Assembly (NCBI RefSeq): GCF_000009045.1
Contig: NC_000964.3
Coordinates: 1,054,001-1,118,000, forward strand
Source of the DNA: Bacillus subtilis subsp. subtilis str. 168
GTDB taxonomy: Bacteria; Bacillota; Bacilli; Bacillales; Bacillaceae
Direction of reading: 5' to 3'
DNA: 64,000 bases
Below, one piece after another: positions 2,702 to 29,756 of this stretch (position 1 is the first letter of the stretch; every line of letters starts with the position of its first letter). The position numbers were made by a program, and so were the translations under genes. The notes beneath the pieces were generated by a model. The model was not told where the DNA came from. It made no database searches and worked only from the letters and a program-made list of their open reading frames with translations.

Positions 2702-3568
2702 GTGTCAAAACAATTGCTTGCCTTAAATATAGATGGAGCGCTGCTTCGGTCGAACGGGAAGATTCATCAGGCAACGAAAGACGCGATTGAATATGTAAAG
2801 AAAAAAGGGATTTACGTCACACTTGTGACCAACCGTCATTTTCGCTCAGCACAGAAAATAGCGAAATCGCTAAAGCTTGATGCCAAGCTGATCACCCATA
2901 GCGGGGCATATATCGCTGAGAAAATTGACGCCCCGTTTTTTGAAAAAAGAATTTCTGATGATCATACCTTTAACATTGTTCAAGTGCTGGAGAGCTATCA
3001 ATGCAATATTCGGCTTCTTCACGAAAAGTATTCCATCGGAAACAAGAAAAAGGTGAATTCGAATTTATTAGGGAAAGCACTCATTCATCCGTCTGACCCG
3101 ATCTTTTATCCAGTCCAGTTCGTTGAATCATTAAGCGATCTCCTCATGGATGAGCCGGTGAGTGCACCCGTCATCGAGGTGTACACGGAGCACGACATTC
3201 AGCATGACATTACAGAAACGATTACAAAAGCCTTCCCTGCGGTGGACGTGATTCGCGTAAACGATGAGAAACTGAATATCGTCCCGAAGGGTGTCTCGAA
3301 GGAAGCGGGTTTGGCCCTCGTCGCTTCAGAGCTGGGCCTGAGTATGGATGATGTCGTGGCCATTGGGCATCAGTATGACGATCTGCCGATGATCGAACTT
3401 GCCGGTCTTGGGGTAGCGATGGGGAATGCCGTTCCGGAAATTAAGAGAAAGGCAGATTGGGTTACAAGGTCCAATGACGAGCAAGGTGTCGCTTATATGA
3501 TGAAGGAATATTTCCGAATGCAGCAGCGAAAAGGATTTCTTGATAAGTTCCACATGAAACGTGTGTAA
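2702..3568 (+). CDS. yhaX: Cof-type HAD-fold protein (spore coat associated; catalytic motifs degenerate)
   Basis: AAGGAGGGGG RBS + GTG; HAD fold motifs recognisable (NIDGALL, KGVSK, GHQYDD, GVAMGNA). Confidence 0.85.
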   Translation: MSKQLLALNIDGALLRSNGKIHQATKDAIEYVKKKGIYVTLVTNRHFRSAQKIAKSLKLDAKLITHSGAYIAEKIDAPFFEKRISDDHTFNIVQVLESYQCNIRLLHEKYSIGNKKKVNSNLLGKALIHPSDPIFYPVQFVESLSDLLMDEPVSAPVIEVYTEHDIQHDITETITKAFPAVDVIRVNDEKLNIVPKGVSKEAGLALVASELGLSMDDVVAIGHQYDDLPMIELAGLGVAMGNAVPEIKRKADWVTRSNDEQGVAYMMKEYFRMQQRKGFLDKFHMKRV

Positions 3569-3607
3569 AAAAGCCGCTCGCGCCCTGACAGGTGCGGCGG
3601 CTTTTTT
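3569..3607 (+). terminator. Intrinsic terminator after yhaX
   Basis: AAGCCGC...GCGGCTT hairpin + T tract. Confidence 0.6.
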
Positions 3608-3679
3608 GCCGGATTGATTTTAGCAGTTTATTTCTGTACACTAAAGAAAGTTTTGAATCTGATAAATTAGGTGATGAAG

Positions 3680-5185
3680 TTGCAAATTAAAATAGAAGGC
3701 ATACATGATGACCGCCTGCATCGGCCTCTGCAAAATATTGCAAATTTGTTTTATGAAGAGTGCGAGCTTGCGTATGGCGGAGAGGAGCCCGCAGATTTTG
3801 TCATTTCTTTAGCGTTGTCACAAACGGATGAGCATGTGACGGTTTCTGGAGAAGTGAAGGGTACTGGCATAAAGGAACAGCATACAAAATTCTTTTCTCC
3901 AGACATGACTGAAAAAGAAGCTTTTAAGCAAGTGAAAAACACAATTTCTTATGTGTATCTCAATCTTCTTCAGGCGCATACGGGCATTACGCAGAAGTGG
4001 GGAATCCTCACAGGAATCCGGCCCACAAAGCTGCTTCATAAAAAACTGCAAAGCGGAATGTCCAAGGAGCAAGCGCATGCTGAGTTGAAAAAAGACTATT
4101 TAATTCATGATGAAAAAATCATGCTAATGCAGGAAATTGTTGACCGTCAGCTGGCGGCAGTGCCGGATTTGTACCGAGTAAAGGATGAAGTCAGCATTTA
4201 TATCGGCATTCCGTTCTGCCCGACAAAATGCGCGTATTGCACATTCCCTGCGTACGCTATCCAAGGACAGGCGGGCAGAGTCGGCTCATTCCTATGGGGA
4301 CTGCATTACGAAATGCAGAAAATCGGTGAATGGCTGAAGGAGCATGATGTTAAGGTTACAACCATTTACTTTGGCGGCGGGACGCCGACAAGCATTACAG
4401 CGGAGGAGATGGATCTGCTGTATGAAGAAATGGTCCGCTCCTTCCCGGATGTGAAAAACATTCGTGAGATTACGGTGGAGGCCGGTCGTCCTGACACGAT
4501 TACAGAAGAAAAACTCGCCGTTTTAAACAAATATGACATTGATCGGATCAGCATCAATCCGCAATCCTACGAAAACGAAACGCTAAAGGCGATCGGGCGG
4601 CACCATACGGTTGAAGAGACCATTGAGAAATATCATCTGTCACGCCAGCACGGCATGAATAATATTAACATGGACTTGATTATTGGTTTGCCTGGGGAAG
4701 GCGTGAAGGAGTTCAGGCACAGTCTTTCAGAAACAGAAAAACTGATGCCGGAATCCCTTACCGTTCATACTCTTTCATTTAAACGGGCGTCAGAAATGAC
4801 GAGAAACAAGCATAAGTACAAAGTTGCCGGCAGGGAAGAGGTTTCTCAAATGATGGAAGACGCGGTAGCCTGGACGAAAGAGCATGGGTACGTGCCTTAT
4901 TATTTATACCGCCAGAAAAACATTCTTGGAAACCTTGAAAACGTCGGATACTCTTTGCCGGGACAAGAAAGCATCTACAACATTATGATTATGGAAGAGG
5001 TGCAGACGATTATTGGCATCGGCTGCGGCGCTGCTAGTAAATTTATTGATCGGGATACAGGGAAAATTACGCATTTTGCGAATCCGAAAGATCCGAAATC
5101 GTACAATGAGCGCTTCGAGCACTACACGGACGAAAAAATCAAATATTTAGAGCAGATTTTTGAAAAAACGACAAAGCAGCACTGA
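3680..5185 (+). CDS. hemZ: HemN-like radical SAM protein
   Basis: TTG start after AGGTG; CPTKCAYC radical-SAM motif, YFGGGTPT, DLIIGLPG. Confidence 0.85.
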   Translation: MQIKIEGIHDDRLHRPLQNIANLFYEECELAYGGEEPADFVISLALSQTDEHVTVSGEVKGTGIKEQHTKFFSPDMTEKEAFKQVKNTISYVYLNLLQAHTGITQKWGILTGIRPTKLLHKKLQSGMSKEQAHAELKKDYLIHDEKIMLMQEIVDRQLAAVPDLYRVKDEVSIYIGIPFCPTKCAYCTFPAYAIQGQAGRVGSFLWGLHYEMQKIGEWLKEHDVKVTTIYFGGGTPTSITAEEMDLLYEEMVRSFPDVKNIREITVEAGRPDTITEEKLAVLNKYDIDRISINPQSYENETLKAIGRHHTVEETIEKYHLSRQHGMNNINMDLIIGLPGEGVKEFRHSLSETEKLMPESLTVHTLSFKRASEMTRNKHKYKVAGREEVSQMMEDAVAWTKEHGYVPYYLYRQKNILGNLENVGYSLPGQESIYNIMIMEEVQTIIGIGCGAASKFIDRDTGKITHFANPKDPKSYNERFEHYTDEKIKYLEQIFEKTTKQH

Positions 5186-5204
5186 TTACAGTGCTGCTTT
5201 TTTT
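5173..5204. terminator. Terminator hemZ/khtU
   Basis: AAAGCAGCACTG-ATTA-CAGTGCTGCTTT + T run. Confidence 0.85.
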
Positions 5205-6420
5205 ATCCCTGTTTTTTTGCGGGCTGAACCTCAGGCTTCCATTTAAATACCTTGTTCAGCAAGCGGTAAATTCGTTTTGATTCCTTTGTGACAAGCGGTC
5301 CCAAAATCGCCAGAATGAGGACATATAATGCGGCAAACGGCTTTAATGTGGCCGACAGTCCGCCGGCTATCCCGAGATTCGCAACGATAATCGAAAATTC
5401 TCCCCGCGATACGATCGTCAGCCCGATATTCGATGAAGCCTTATGAGAAAGCCCTGCGCGTCGTCCTGCCACCATTCCGGCGATAAAATTTCCCAGAATG
5501 GTCAAAATCACTGCACCCAACGCAAGCCAAACCGCTTCACCAAGCGAAAACGGATCGATGCTGAGGCCGAAGCTGAAAAAGAACATCGCACCGAAGAAGT
5601 CGCGAAACGGAACAACGAGGTGTTCAATCCTATCGGAATGCTCTGTTTCTGAAAAGACCAAACCGAGCAGCAGCGCGCCGATTGCTTCTGCTACATGAAT
5701 CGTCTCTGAAAAACCGGCGATAAAAAAGAGTGCTGCGAAAATGACGATAATAAACACTTCGTTTGAGCGAATGTCCAACAGTTTGTTCAACAGCGGCGGG
5801 AGTTTTCTTGCTGCGATAAAAAACAGCAGCATATAACCGAAGGCGATCAAAATGGACAAGAGTGCACTCCCTACGGATGTCGCATCACCTAGTATAAGGC
5901 CGGAAACAACGGACAGATATACGGCAAGGAAAATATCTTCAAACATGATGATGCCGAGAATCAATTCGGTTTCCGGGTTGGCGGTTCTTTTTAAATCAAC
6001 GAGCACTTTTGCGACAATCGCACTTGACGAGATTGTGATGACGCCTGCGAGGATGAGGACTTCCAGAAAGGAAAATCCGGTGATAAACCCGTAAAGCAGT
6101 CCGAGGCTGAAGTTAATCAAAATATAAATCGTCCCGCCGACCGCGATTGATTTTCCTGATTTGATTAACTTCCCGACAGAGAATTCGAGTCCGAGATAGA
6201 AGAGGAGGAACAGTACGCCCATTCGCCCGAAAAACTCGATGATTTCACTGCTTTGAATAAATGTTAGATCAATAATCCCCATTTTCGGCGCGTGCGGTCC
6301 AACAAGCATTCCCAGCACAATCAGAAACGGAATAATCGAAAATTTAATTTTATTGGCGATCACACTGGCGATTGCCACAAGCACAAGTGCAGTTCCGACT
6401 TCAAATACAAGATGGTCCAT
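5203..6420 (-). CDS. khtU: K+/H+ antiporter, CPA2 family membrane subunit
   Basis: 405 aa polytopic membrane protein; IMFEDI and SRGEFS CPA2 motifs. Confidence 0.9.
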   Translation of the reverse strand: MDHLVFEVGTALVLVAIASVIANKIKFSIIPFLIVLGMLVGPHAPKMGIIDLTFIQSSEIIEFFGRMGVLFLLFYLGLEFSVGKLIKSGKSIAVGGTIYILINFSLGLLYGFITGFSFLEVLILAGVITISSSAIVAKVLVDLKRTANPETELILGIIMFEDIFLAVYLSVVSGLILGDATSVGSALLSILIAFGYMLLFFIAARKLPPLLNKLLDIRSNEVFIIVIFAALFFIAGFSETIHVAEAIGALLLGLVFSETEHSDRIEHLVVPFRDFFGAMFFFSFGLSIDPFSLGEAVWLALGAVILTILGNFIAGMVAGRRAGLSHKASSNIGLTIVSRGEFSIIVANLGIAGGLSATLKPFAALYVLILAILGPLVTKESKRIYRLLNKVFKWKPEVQPAKKQG

Positions 6421-28869: not shown

Positions 28870-29184
28870 TTATGATGGAAGATGAACATTGATCTGTTTC
28901 AGCTGCTCAATCAGATGATGCCTTAATCCTCTATTCGCTTTTTGCAGATGTTTTGGGAAGCATTCAGGAGAAAAAATGACGCACCCTTCAGCAAGCCAGT
29001 TTTTTCTATAGGCGATGATGCTTTCCGATGGCTCTATATGAGTTATCCTCGTGCTGCATCTCGTACTCATCAAATCCGAACTGAAAACCGCAGCACGGGC
29101 AGATTTCATGAGAATGATTGCCTTCATGATCATATGGCGGTTCAGCCAATCCTTAAACCCGCAGACTGGGCAAGTATGCTTCAT
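28870..29184 (-). pseudogene. yhgB: Cys-motif (CxxC + CPCC) protein with two compensating frameshifts; open as 104 aa but middle third out of frame
   Basis: GGGAGG RBS; MKHTCPVCGFK in frame 0; GLAEPPYDHEGNHSHEICPCCGFQFGFDEY in the -1 frame; back to frame 0 for IEPSESIIAYRKNW. Confidence 0.6.
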
Positions 29185-29228
29185 TTTGCTTTCCTCCCAA
29201 TAAAATAAGCTGCCGGACATGCCGGCAG

Positions 29229-29756
<528 letters not shown>

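Follow-up and report, generated by a model that had tools for sequence, protein, structure and literature searches.

The stretch of Bacillus subtilis subsp. subtilis str. 168 DNA considered here (64,000 nucleotides (nt); hereafter the window) contains yhgB, an annotated open reading frame (ORF) of 104 codons plus a stop at positions 28870–29184 of the minus strand, the strand to which all window coordinates below refer. A preliminary description of the window had claimed that this ORF carries two compensating frameshifts hiding a CPCC motif in the other frame, which raises a simple question: is yhgB, as it is read today, a gene, and if not, what was it? In our view it is quite probably a pseudogene that has stayed open, descended from a probable Cys4 immunity protein against a colicin-D-like tRNase, an orphan that has been lost repeatedly.

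In frame 0 the ORF starts with ATG at 29184, stops at 28870–28872 and yields a net product of 104 amino acids (aa). Its translation reads MKHTCPVCGFK followed by DWLNRHMIMKAIILMKSARAAVFSSDLMSTRCSTRITHI and then EPSESIIAYRKNWLAEGC..., the final part also being rendered as EPSESIIAYRKNWLAEGCVIFSPECFPKHLQKANRGLRHHLIEQLKQINVHLPS. The frame that starts at 29182, two bases further on, reads GLAEPPYDHEGNHSHEICPCCGFQFGFDEYEMQHEDNSYRAIGKHHRL between two stops. Both ends of frame 0 are in the ancestral frame and the middle is out of it. The N-terminal segment MKHTCPVCGFK (29152–29184) carries the first cysteine pair, equivalent to C5 and C8 of the protein family described below; at the sequence AAGG (29151–29154) the window is 1 nt short of every aligned orthologue (columns 87 and 50 of the DNA alignments). 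Along the segment that follows (29036–29152) the ancestral text stands in the alternative frame, as 39 codons reading GLAEPPYDHEGNHSHEICPCCGFQFGFDEYEMQHEDNSY that include the second pair (C29 and C32), and frame 0 gives the unrelated text DWLNRHMIMKAIILMKSARAAVFSSDLMSTRCSTRITH. At an ATATA run (29035–29039) the window lacks another 2 nt relative to the orthologues (columns 204–205); here the ancestral frame is regained with one codon lost, and the last 54 codons, EPSESIIAYRKNWLAEG...QLKQINVHLPS (28873–29034), are again ancestral, with the conserved residues R61, W64, Q95 and L96 present. Both sites lie where the preliminary description had placed them (29154–29151 and 29039–29035).

A profile of the intact family (A4, built from 36 sequences) matches the frame-0 ORF with an expectation value (E) of 8.5e-16, and it matches a 48-codon piece of the alternative frame alone (29009–29152) with E 1.4e-15 over profile positions 14–52, the second cysteine pair included. 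Each frame was searched as a piece of its own, with natural intact orthologues standing in for a repaired B. subtilis sequence. A two-frame pattern of this kind is far more than chance would produce. Upstream of the ATG, at a distance of 8 nt, lies a Shine-Dalgarno-like GGGAGG (29193–29198) that is conserved in the orthologues.

These orthologues supply the ancestral frame directly. A search of a protein collection with the 104-aa ORF gave 11 proteins at E ≤0.01 among 12 candidates, with full-length matches in P0002 (B. vallismortis, 106 aa), P0003 (a B. cabrialesii cluster, 105 aa), P0004 (B. halotolerans) and P0008 (B. mojavensis). Of these, P0002, P0003 and P0004 are continuous and read MK.xCPVCGFKGLTEP.YD..G.HS.EIC.CCGFQFG.DD.EM..EDGSYLEPSESI.AYRKNWLA..., which is the alternative-frame text of the window set between its frame-0 ends. 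Intact orthologues of 104–106 aa in B. cabrialesii, B. inaquosorum, B. vallismortis, B. spizizenii and B. halotolerans keep the CPVC...CPCC frame, and loci L001, L002, L054, L056 and L057 likewise read CPVC...C[PSL]CC without interruption. The gene order hmoB-yhgB-yhfA is retained in L001–L005 and L052–L057, and together with the profile match it places yhgB among the descendants of the YhgB-like family. DNA alignments against B. inaquosorum, B. spizizenii, a cabrialesii-like genome and others show gaps unique to the window at just two places, one base in AA-GG and two bases in ATA--TAG, about 117 nt apart, the net −3 leaving 104 rather than 105 codons. CPVC thus stands in frame 0 of the window and CPCC in its alternative frame, and in the orthologues both are contiguous, the CPCC being preceded by the CxxC.

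The translations, the separate profile matches and the gaps of 1 and 2 nt bear out the claim of two compensating frameshifts. The further proposal that the open ORF is not the ancestral protein, and that a coherent CxxC...CPCC protein of about 105 aa preceded it, is supported by the natural intact orthologues and the DNA alignments, which point to such an ancestor having been hit by a −1 and then a −2 lesion. Had the orthologues conserved the frame reading DWLNRHMIMK, the proposal would have fallen; that frame is confined to B. subtilis sequences, and the orthologues keep a frame of the GLAEPPYD...CPCC type. Two other proteins, P0006 and P0007, were considered as alleles sharing the first lesion of the window and were dropped, the DNA alignment having shown that they come from genes broken independently and called in another frame. 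P0008 also follows the ancestral frame, with a short scrambled stretch (SRSTSSS against YPQHQQQ in its relatives) before it returns to frame; at the level of the protein sequence, comparison with L004:3220-3260 suggests another compensated pair of frameshifts in this gene, shorter than that of the window, which would share the 1-nt insertion truncating the B. mojavensis ATCC 51516 copy.

Translations and alignments show that the gene has been broken independently in at least four sister lineages, at positions other than those of the window, and is intact in other strains and species. Bacillus sp. N13C7 (L003:3001-3330) and a Logan contig (L052:1578-1935) carry an in-frame TAG at codon 44 and a 1-nt insertion. 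The closest relative of the window by its flanks (L053:2449-2780; 94–96.5% identity) combines an insertion of 1 nt near codon 40 with a deletion of 10 nt. In B. mojavensis ATCC 51516 (L004:3001-3330) a 1-nt insertion leads to a stop at codon 84, and the copy of B. halotolerans ATCC 25096 (L005:3001-3290) has suffered deletions of 1, 29 and 1 nt. At this locus yhgB is the most diverged gene, with 74–87% nucleotide identity against 83–96% for yhfA, hmoB and pbpF. Pairwise ratios of nonsynonymous to synonymous substitution rates (dN/dS) among intact copies range from 0.05 to 0.42, so that the intact gene is under purifying selection. The window copy combines frame-disrupting lesions, as measured against intact orthologues, with the loss of invariant residues, both being features of a pseudogene. 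Codon 48 of the ancestral frame (29041–29046), some 3 nt away from the 2-nt gap of the second lesion, has changed from GGT to AAC in B. subtilis only, and three neighbouring substitutions so close to the gap suggest that a single complex mutation, and not several separate ones, occurred here.

Three causes had been proposed for the scrambled middle: a true double lesion, a persistent sequencing error and, as the less likely option, recoding. NCBI, ENA and Logan together contain at least 1000 contigs that encode the exact product of the window (P0001), among them complete chromosomes of 4.1–4.5 Mb, the longest contig being 4.48 Mb. All 11 members of its 90% cluster carry both shifts, the ten others differing by start codon, a few substitutions or extra frameshifts, and further frame-disrupted alleles (P0019 and P0021) occur inside the B. 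subtilis cluster. An artefact in the reference that conceals an intact gene could appeal to the sites themselves, a G-run within AAGG and a TA repeat, because some chemistries tend to err at short repeats; since the identical product is found on at least 1000 contigs, some above 4 Mb, and both shifts are found in every cluster variant, a persistent sequencing error is excluded and we give an artefact next to no credence. Among the matches to the 104-aa ORF there is no intact or single-lesion allele of the B. subtilis type. Intact alleles labelled ‘Bacillus subtilis’ fall in the cabrialesii cluster, and the one retrieved (L054) has flanks only 90–93.5% identical to the window and therefore belongs to another species. 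Programmed recoding, with a ribosomal −1 slip at AAGG and a further slip of +1 or −2 in the ATATA run still giving the Cys4 protein, would fit an alternative-frame segment that is near perfect and retains every family-conserved residue. The canonical slippery motif for −1 frameshifting is an X XXY YYZ heptamer, and the first site, GGG TTT AAG G, provides no such heptamer in frame 0; the second site contains no shift-prone motif known to us from −1 and +1 sites, and to our knowledge two shifts within one 105-codon gene would be unprecedented. Orthologues need no shift at either site and relatives break the gene elsewhere, by stops and by deletions of 10 and 29 nt, so that the lesions look like decay and not like a conserved device. 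The preservation of the hidden frame is explained by a short branch with only 12 lineage-specific substitutions. We regard recoding as highly improbable, and a true double lesion, −1 then −2, fixed on at least 1000 contigs and with its gaps private to the window, is the cause that stands.

What the ancestral protein may have done is suggested by its family. Across the 36 aligned sequences C5, C29, C32 and W64 are invariant, and C8, G9, L13, I28, G37, R61, Q95 and L96 are nearly so. Frame 0 of the window keeps C5, C8 and the C-terminal residues and lacks C29 and C32; the intact orthologues carry all four cysteines in one frame. An exhaustive profile search collected 783 cluster representatives at E ≤0.001 (77 at ≤1e-10), spread over Bacillaceae, Paenibacillus, Verrucomicrobiota, Acidobacteriota, Chloroflexota and others. 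Neither Pfam nor NCBIfam yielded a match when the window ORF and its pieces were scanned, and PF14206 (Cys_rich_CPCC) did not appear even at E 10. Against four intact close orthologues this Pfam family scores E 6e-5 to 7e-3 (16.6–23.2 bits; model positions 1–60 of 75), and it matches 14 of the 36 family members at E ≤0.01, none of which reaches the gathering threshold of 24.5 bits. The relation to a CPCC-type family, for which a profile search had been suggested, is real, yet even the best match (23.2 bits) stays below the curated cut-off; the YhgB-like family is probably a distant relative of PF14206. A few members weakly match nucleic-acid-binding zinc ribbons such as those of TFIIB and primase, and a search of PDB sequences with the family profile gave only weak matches to zinc-ribbon and rubredoxin knuckles (E ≥0.085).

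An AlphaFold2 model of the intact B. cabrialesii orthologue forms one compact unit (predicted local distance difference test score, pLDDT, 87.5; predicted template modelling score, pTM, 0.77), with short beta hairpins around the cysteine pairs followed by helices at 53–66 and 89–98. Judging from this model, a product in which half of the metal site is swapped for unrelated sequence is unlikely to fold like the intact orthologue.

A functional hint comes from the gene upstream. Of 46 related loci from outside the B. subtilis group, 33 share one feature: the same-strand ORF directly upstream of the YhgB-like gene carries a conserved domain of about 100 aa and ends 0–40 nt before that gene, often overlapping its start by 4 nt. 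A profile of this domain was built from ten upstream ORFs (about 105 aa each) that align well with one another and conserve H16, H20, Y32, D37, E50, R53 and R60. The domain lies at or close to the C-terminus of carriers that measure 87–604 aa and vary at the N-terminus. The closest YhgB homologues from outside the B. subtilis group come from three of these loci, L006, L007 and L051 of Bacillaceae. The domain matches chain A of PDB entry 8ey4, whose title names a contact-dependent growth inhibition (CDI) toxin-immunity complex, with E 7.8e-10 by sequence. Its AlphaFold model (pLDDT 89.8) has two helices, a four-stranded sheet and a C-terminal helix, and the structural matches are led by 8ey4_A, followed by the colicin D tRNase entries 1tfk, 5znm, 1tfo and 1v74. 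The BECR RNase fold and the toxin-immunity gene architecture of polymorphic toxins have been described before (PMC3482391).

In the L006 and L051 carriers the N-terminal part corresponds to NCBIfam NF038340, ‘SAR2788 family putative toxin’ (E 4.5e-63). The two-gene modules lie at L006:2068-2982 + 3001-3306 and L051:4129-4980 + 5001-5321, and around position 3001 in L034, L036, L037, L041, L042, L044 and L047. A bulk Pfam scan of the upstream neighbours turned up no recurrent annotated family, the partner domain being absent from Pfam; at curated thresholds no Pfam family matches either this toxin domain or its YhgB-like partner. YhgB-like domains are also found fused to SMI1_KNR4/SUKH immunity domains, to DUF2247, DUF7674 and DUF6980, and to true PF14206 domains. 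Because a conserved C-terminal toxin on a variable carrier is followed by a small coupled gene, and because that gene's product is fused to immunity domains, we propose that the YhgB-like family is probably an unannotated Cys4 immunity family for colicin-D-like tRNase toxins.

Two loci depart from the simple pair. In Oceanobacillus sp. J11TS1 (L009:2102-3321) the YhgB-like gene has no adjacent toxin; the genes that precede it on the same strand are of the SUKH/SMI1_KNR4 and DUF7878 kinds, an arrangement resembling an array of immunity genes. In a member of Chthonomonadaceae (L043:2854-4126) a YhgB-like gene, a toxin-domain gene (3396–3797) and a second YhgB-like gene (3791–4126) succeed one another, so that the toxin is flanked by two immunity-type copies.

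The window holds no such partner. A profile search of its 64 kb found no toxin-domain ORF, and the gene upstream of yhgB is hmoB. A word-based search with a Bacillaceae toxin domain matched proteins of Mesobacillus, Terribacillus, Exiguobacterium and Priestia and none from the B. subtilis group, the sensitivity of this search being limited. In the window yhgB lies between hmoB and yhfA, 44 nt separating the hmoB stop from the yhgB start. An intrinsic-terminator-like hairpin with a T-run, assigned to hmoB (29208–29230) and conserved in the DNA alignment, directly abuts the yhgB ribosome-binding site, and no sigma-70-like promoter was found between the two. The yhgB of the B. subtilis group is best seen, on the evidence of its sequence context, as an orphan immunity gene without a toxin partner. 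The same abutment of terminator and Shine-Dalgarno sequence (29185–29230) occurs in species with an intact yhgB; read-through of the terminator is one possibility for the transcription of the intact gene.

We propose the following course of events. The ancestor would have been a protein of about 105 aa whose two cysteine pairs, CPVC...CPCC, are predicted to form a zinc-ribbon-like module packed on two C-terminal helices, and which would bind and neutralise the colicin-D-like (BECR-fold) tRNase domain of polymorphic toxins. As an orphan, it would be useful only against toxins from other bacteria and dispensable when those are not met, a situation expected to lead to repeated loss. In the B. subtilis lineage a loss of 1 nt after codon 11 and of 2 nt about 39 codons on would have thrown the stretch between them out of frame, leaving an annotated product with the first cysteine pair and the C-terminal half and without the second pair. 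Our verdict is that the frame stayed open after the double lesion by chance compensation, and that the locus is an ordinary kind of object, a pseudogenised orphan immunity gene.

Several observations weigh against this reading. An open ORF with a good ribosome-binding site, in which 65 of 104 residues remain in the ancestral frame, leaves room for a residual or new function. The B. subtilis branch carries 12 private substitutions, about 7 nonsynonymous and about 4 synonymous, too few to demonstrate neutrality. Hardly any mutation has reached the alternative-frame middle, which marks the lesions as recent in evolutionary terms, and this youth is also why the hidden frame is still pristine. Thirteen of the 46 related loci have no adjacent toxin, and a Foldseek comparison of the intact-orthologue model with the PDB gave no match with E <1, the immunity chain of 8ey4 included. 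The proposed immunity role draws on gene neighbourhood and domain fusions, and zinc binding, plausible for the ancestor, on the cysteine pattern and the weak zinc-ribbon and rubredoxin matches. Literature searches returned no paper mentioning yhgB, and nothing relevant on PF14206, 8EY4 or SAR2788. These points give some room to the idea that the 104-aa product is a functional young protein, in which the second frameshift was selected for restoring the helical half and the new 38-residue middle perhaps alters binding. The open ORF with its conserved Shine-Dalgarno sequence would fit this idea, as would the species-wide fixation with no single-lesion allele among the matches, the retention of R61, W64, Q95 and L96, and a dN/dS of 0.24 for the C-terminal segment against B. 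inaquosorum. However, pairwise dN/dS mostly reflects time before the lesions, and the B. subtilis branch itself has the ratio of about 7 to 4 given above. Two of the four conserved cysteines are gone, and half a zinc module is unlikely to fold, given how compact the intact model is. The additional disrupted alleles P0019 and P0021, the breakage of the same gene in four sister lineages and the absence from the 64-kb window of a toxin partner on which the protein could act also make it unlikely that the present product is functional.

A different doubt concerns the ancestor, which might have been a small zinc-ribbon regulator or metal handler tied to HmoB and not an immunity protein. The Cys4 pattern, the adjacent hmoB and the weak TFIIB and primase matches of a few family members are compatible with this idea. 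Yet adjacency to hmoB, yhfA and pbpF is confined to the B. subtilis group (L001–L005), for which reason a link to haem is unsupported; the neighbour conserved from phylum to phylum is the toxin-domain gene; a terminator stands between hmoB and yhgB; and the fusions are with immunity-type domains. We consider an HmoB-tied ancestor very unlikely. The preliminary description had foreseen a four-Cys metal-binding protein beside the haem oxygenase gene hmoB, of which the four cysteines are confirmed, metal binding appears plausible and the functional link to hmoB falls away. The reading of yhgB as a decayed orphan immunity gene remains the one that we prefer.

Comparison with known systems helps to place the family. 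Like PF14206, YhgB-like proteins have two cysteine pairs with a CPCC-type second knuckle, a similar size and fusions to SUKH-type or other small domains; unlike PF14206, they possess a conserved C-terminal helical half of their own (R61, W64, Q95 and L96), and the co-occurrence of a true PF14206 domain (E 1.6e-24) and a YhgB-like one within some proteins marks the two as distinct modules. With the CdiA-CT/CdiI and colicin D/ImmD pairs (8ey4, 1v74 and 1tfk) the YhgB-like loci share the order of a toxin followed by a small immunity gene, often translationally coupled, and an upstream partner that is homologous to the 8ey4 toxin chain, adopts the colicin D tRNase (BECR) fold and carries its toxin at or near the C-terminal end behind varied N-termini. 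In contrast to CdiI and ImmD, the YhgB-like protein has neither sequence nor fold similarity to any PDB chain, the immunity chains of 8ey4 and ImmD included, and would represent a different, Cys4-type family; in contrast to CDI pairs, the window contains no toxin gene. As in orphan immunity genes of SUKH/SMI1_KNR4 arrays, yhgB stands alone without a toxin and evolves faster than its neighbours, and the Oceanobacillus locus is array-like; unlike such arrays, the yhgB of the B. subtilis group is a single gene between housekeeping-type genes, outside any island, and is frameshifted in B. subtilis. Compensated-frameshift pseudogenes and ORFs show the same nearby indels summing to a multiple of three (here −1 and −2), a scrambled stretch and an open frame. 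What sets yhgB apart is that its scrambled stretch removes invariant metal-ligand residues, so that the frame was restored and the function probably was not.

What the present analysis adds is a function prediction at the level of the family and the recognition of the B. subtilis copy as one of several independent decays, the former being most worth testing. A family of at least 783 sequence clusters, so far uncharacterised, thereby acquires a testable candidate function: a Cys4, probably zinc-binding protein that would confer immunity to colicin-D-like tRNase toxins, the predicted targets including the Bacillaceae ‘SAR2788 family putative toxins’. The B. subtilis complex, with its intact, compensated and broken alleles, offers a small natural series for the loss of an orphan immunity gene once the matching toxin is no longer met. 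For annotation, the coding sequence present in very many B. subtilis assemblies is a scrambled remnant, better flagged as a frameshifted pseudogene than as a 104-aa hypothetical protein, and homology transfer from annotated yhgB would spread a false middle sequence. In the region 28870–29220 the product called differs from one B. subtilis assembly to another, at 87 aa (start MIMKAII), 104 aa or 116 aa (start MSGSLFY), a disagreement between gene callers that is typical of a decayed gene.

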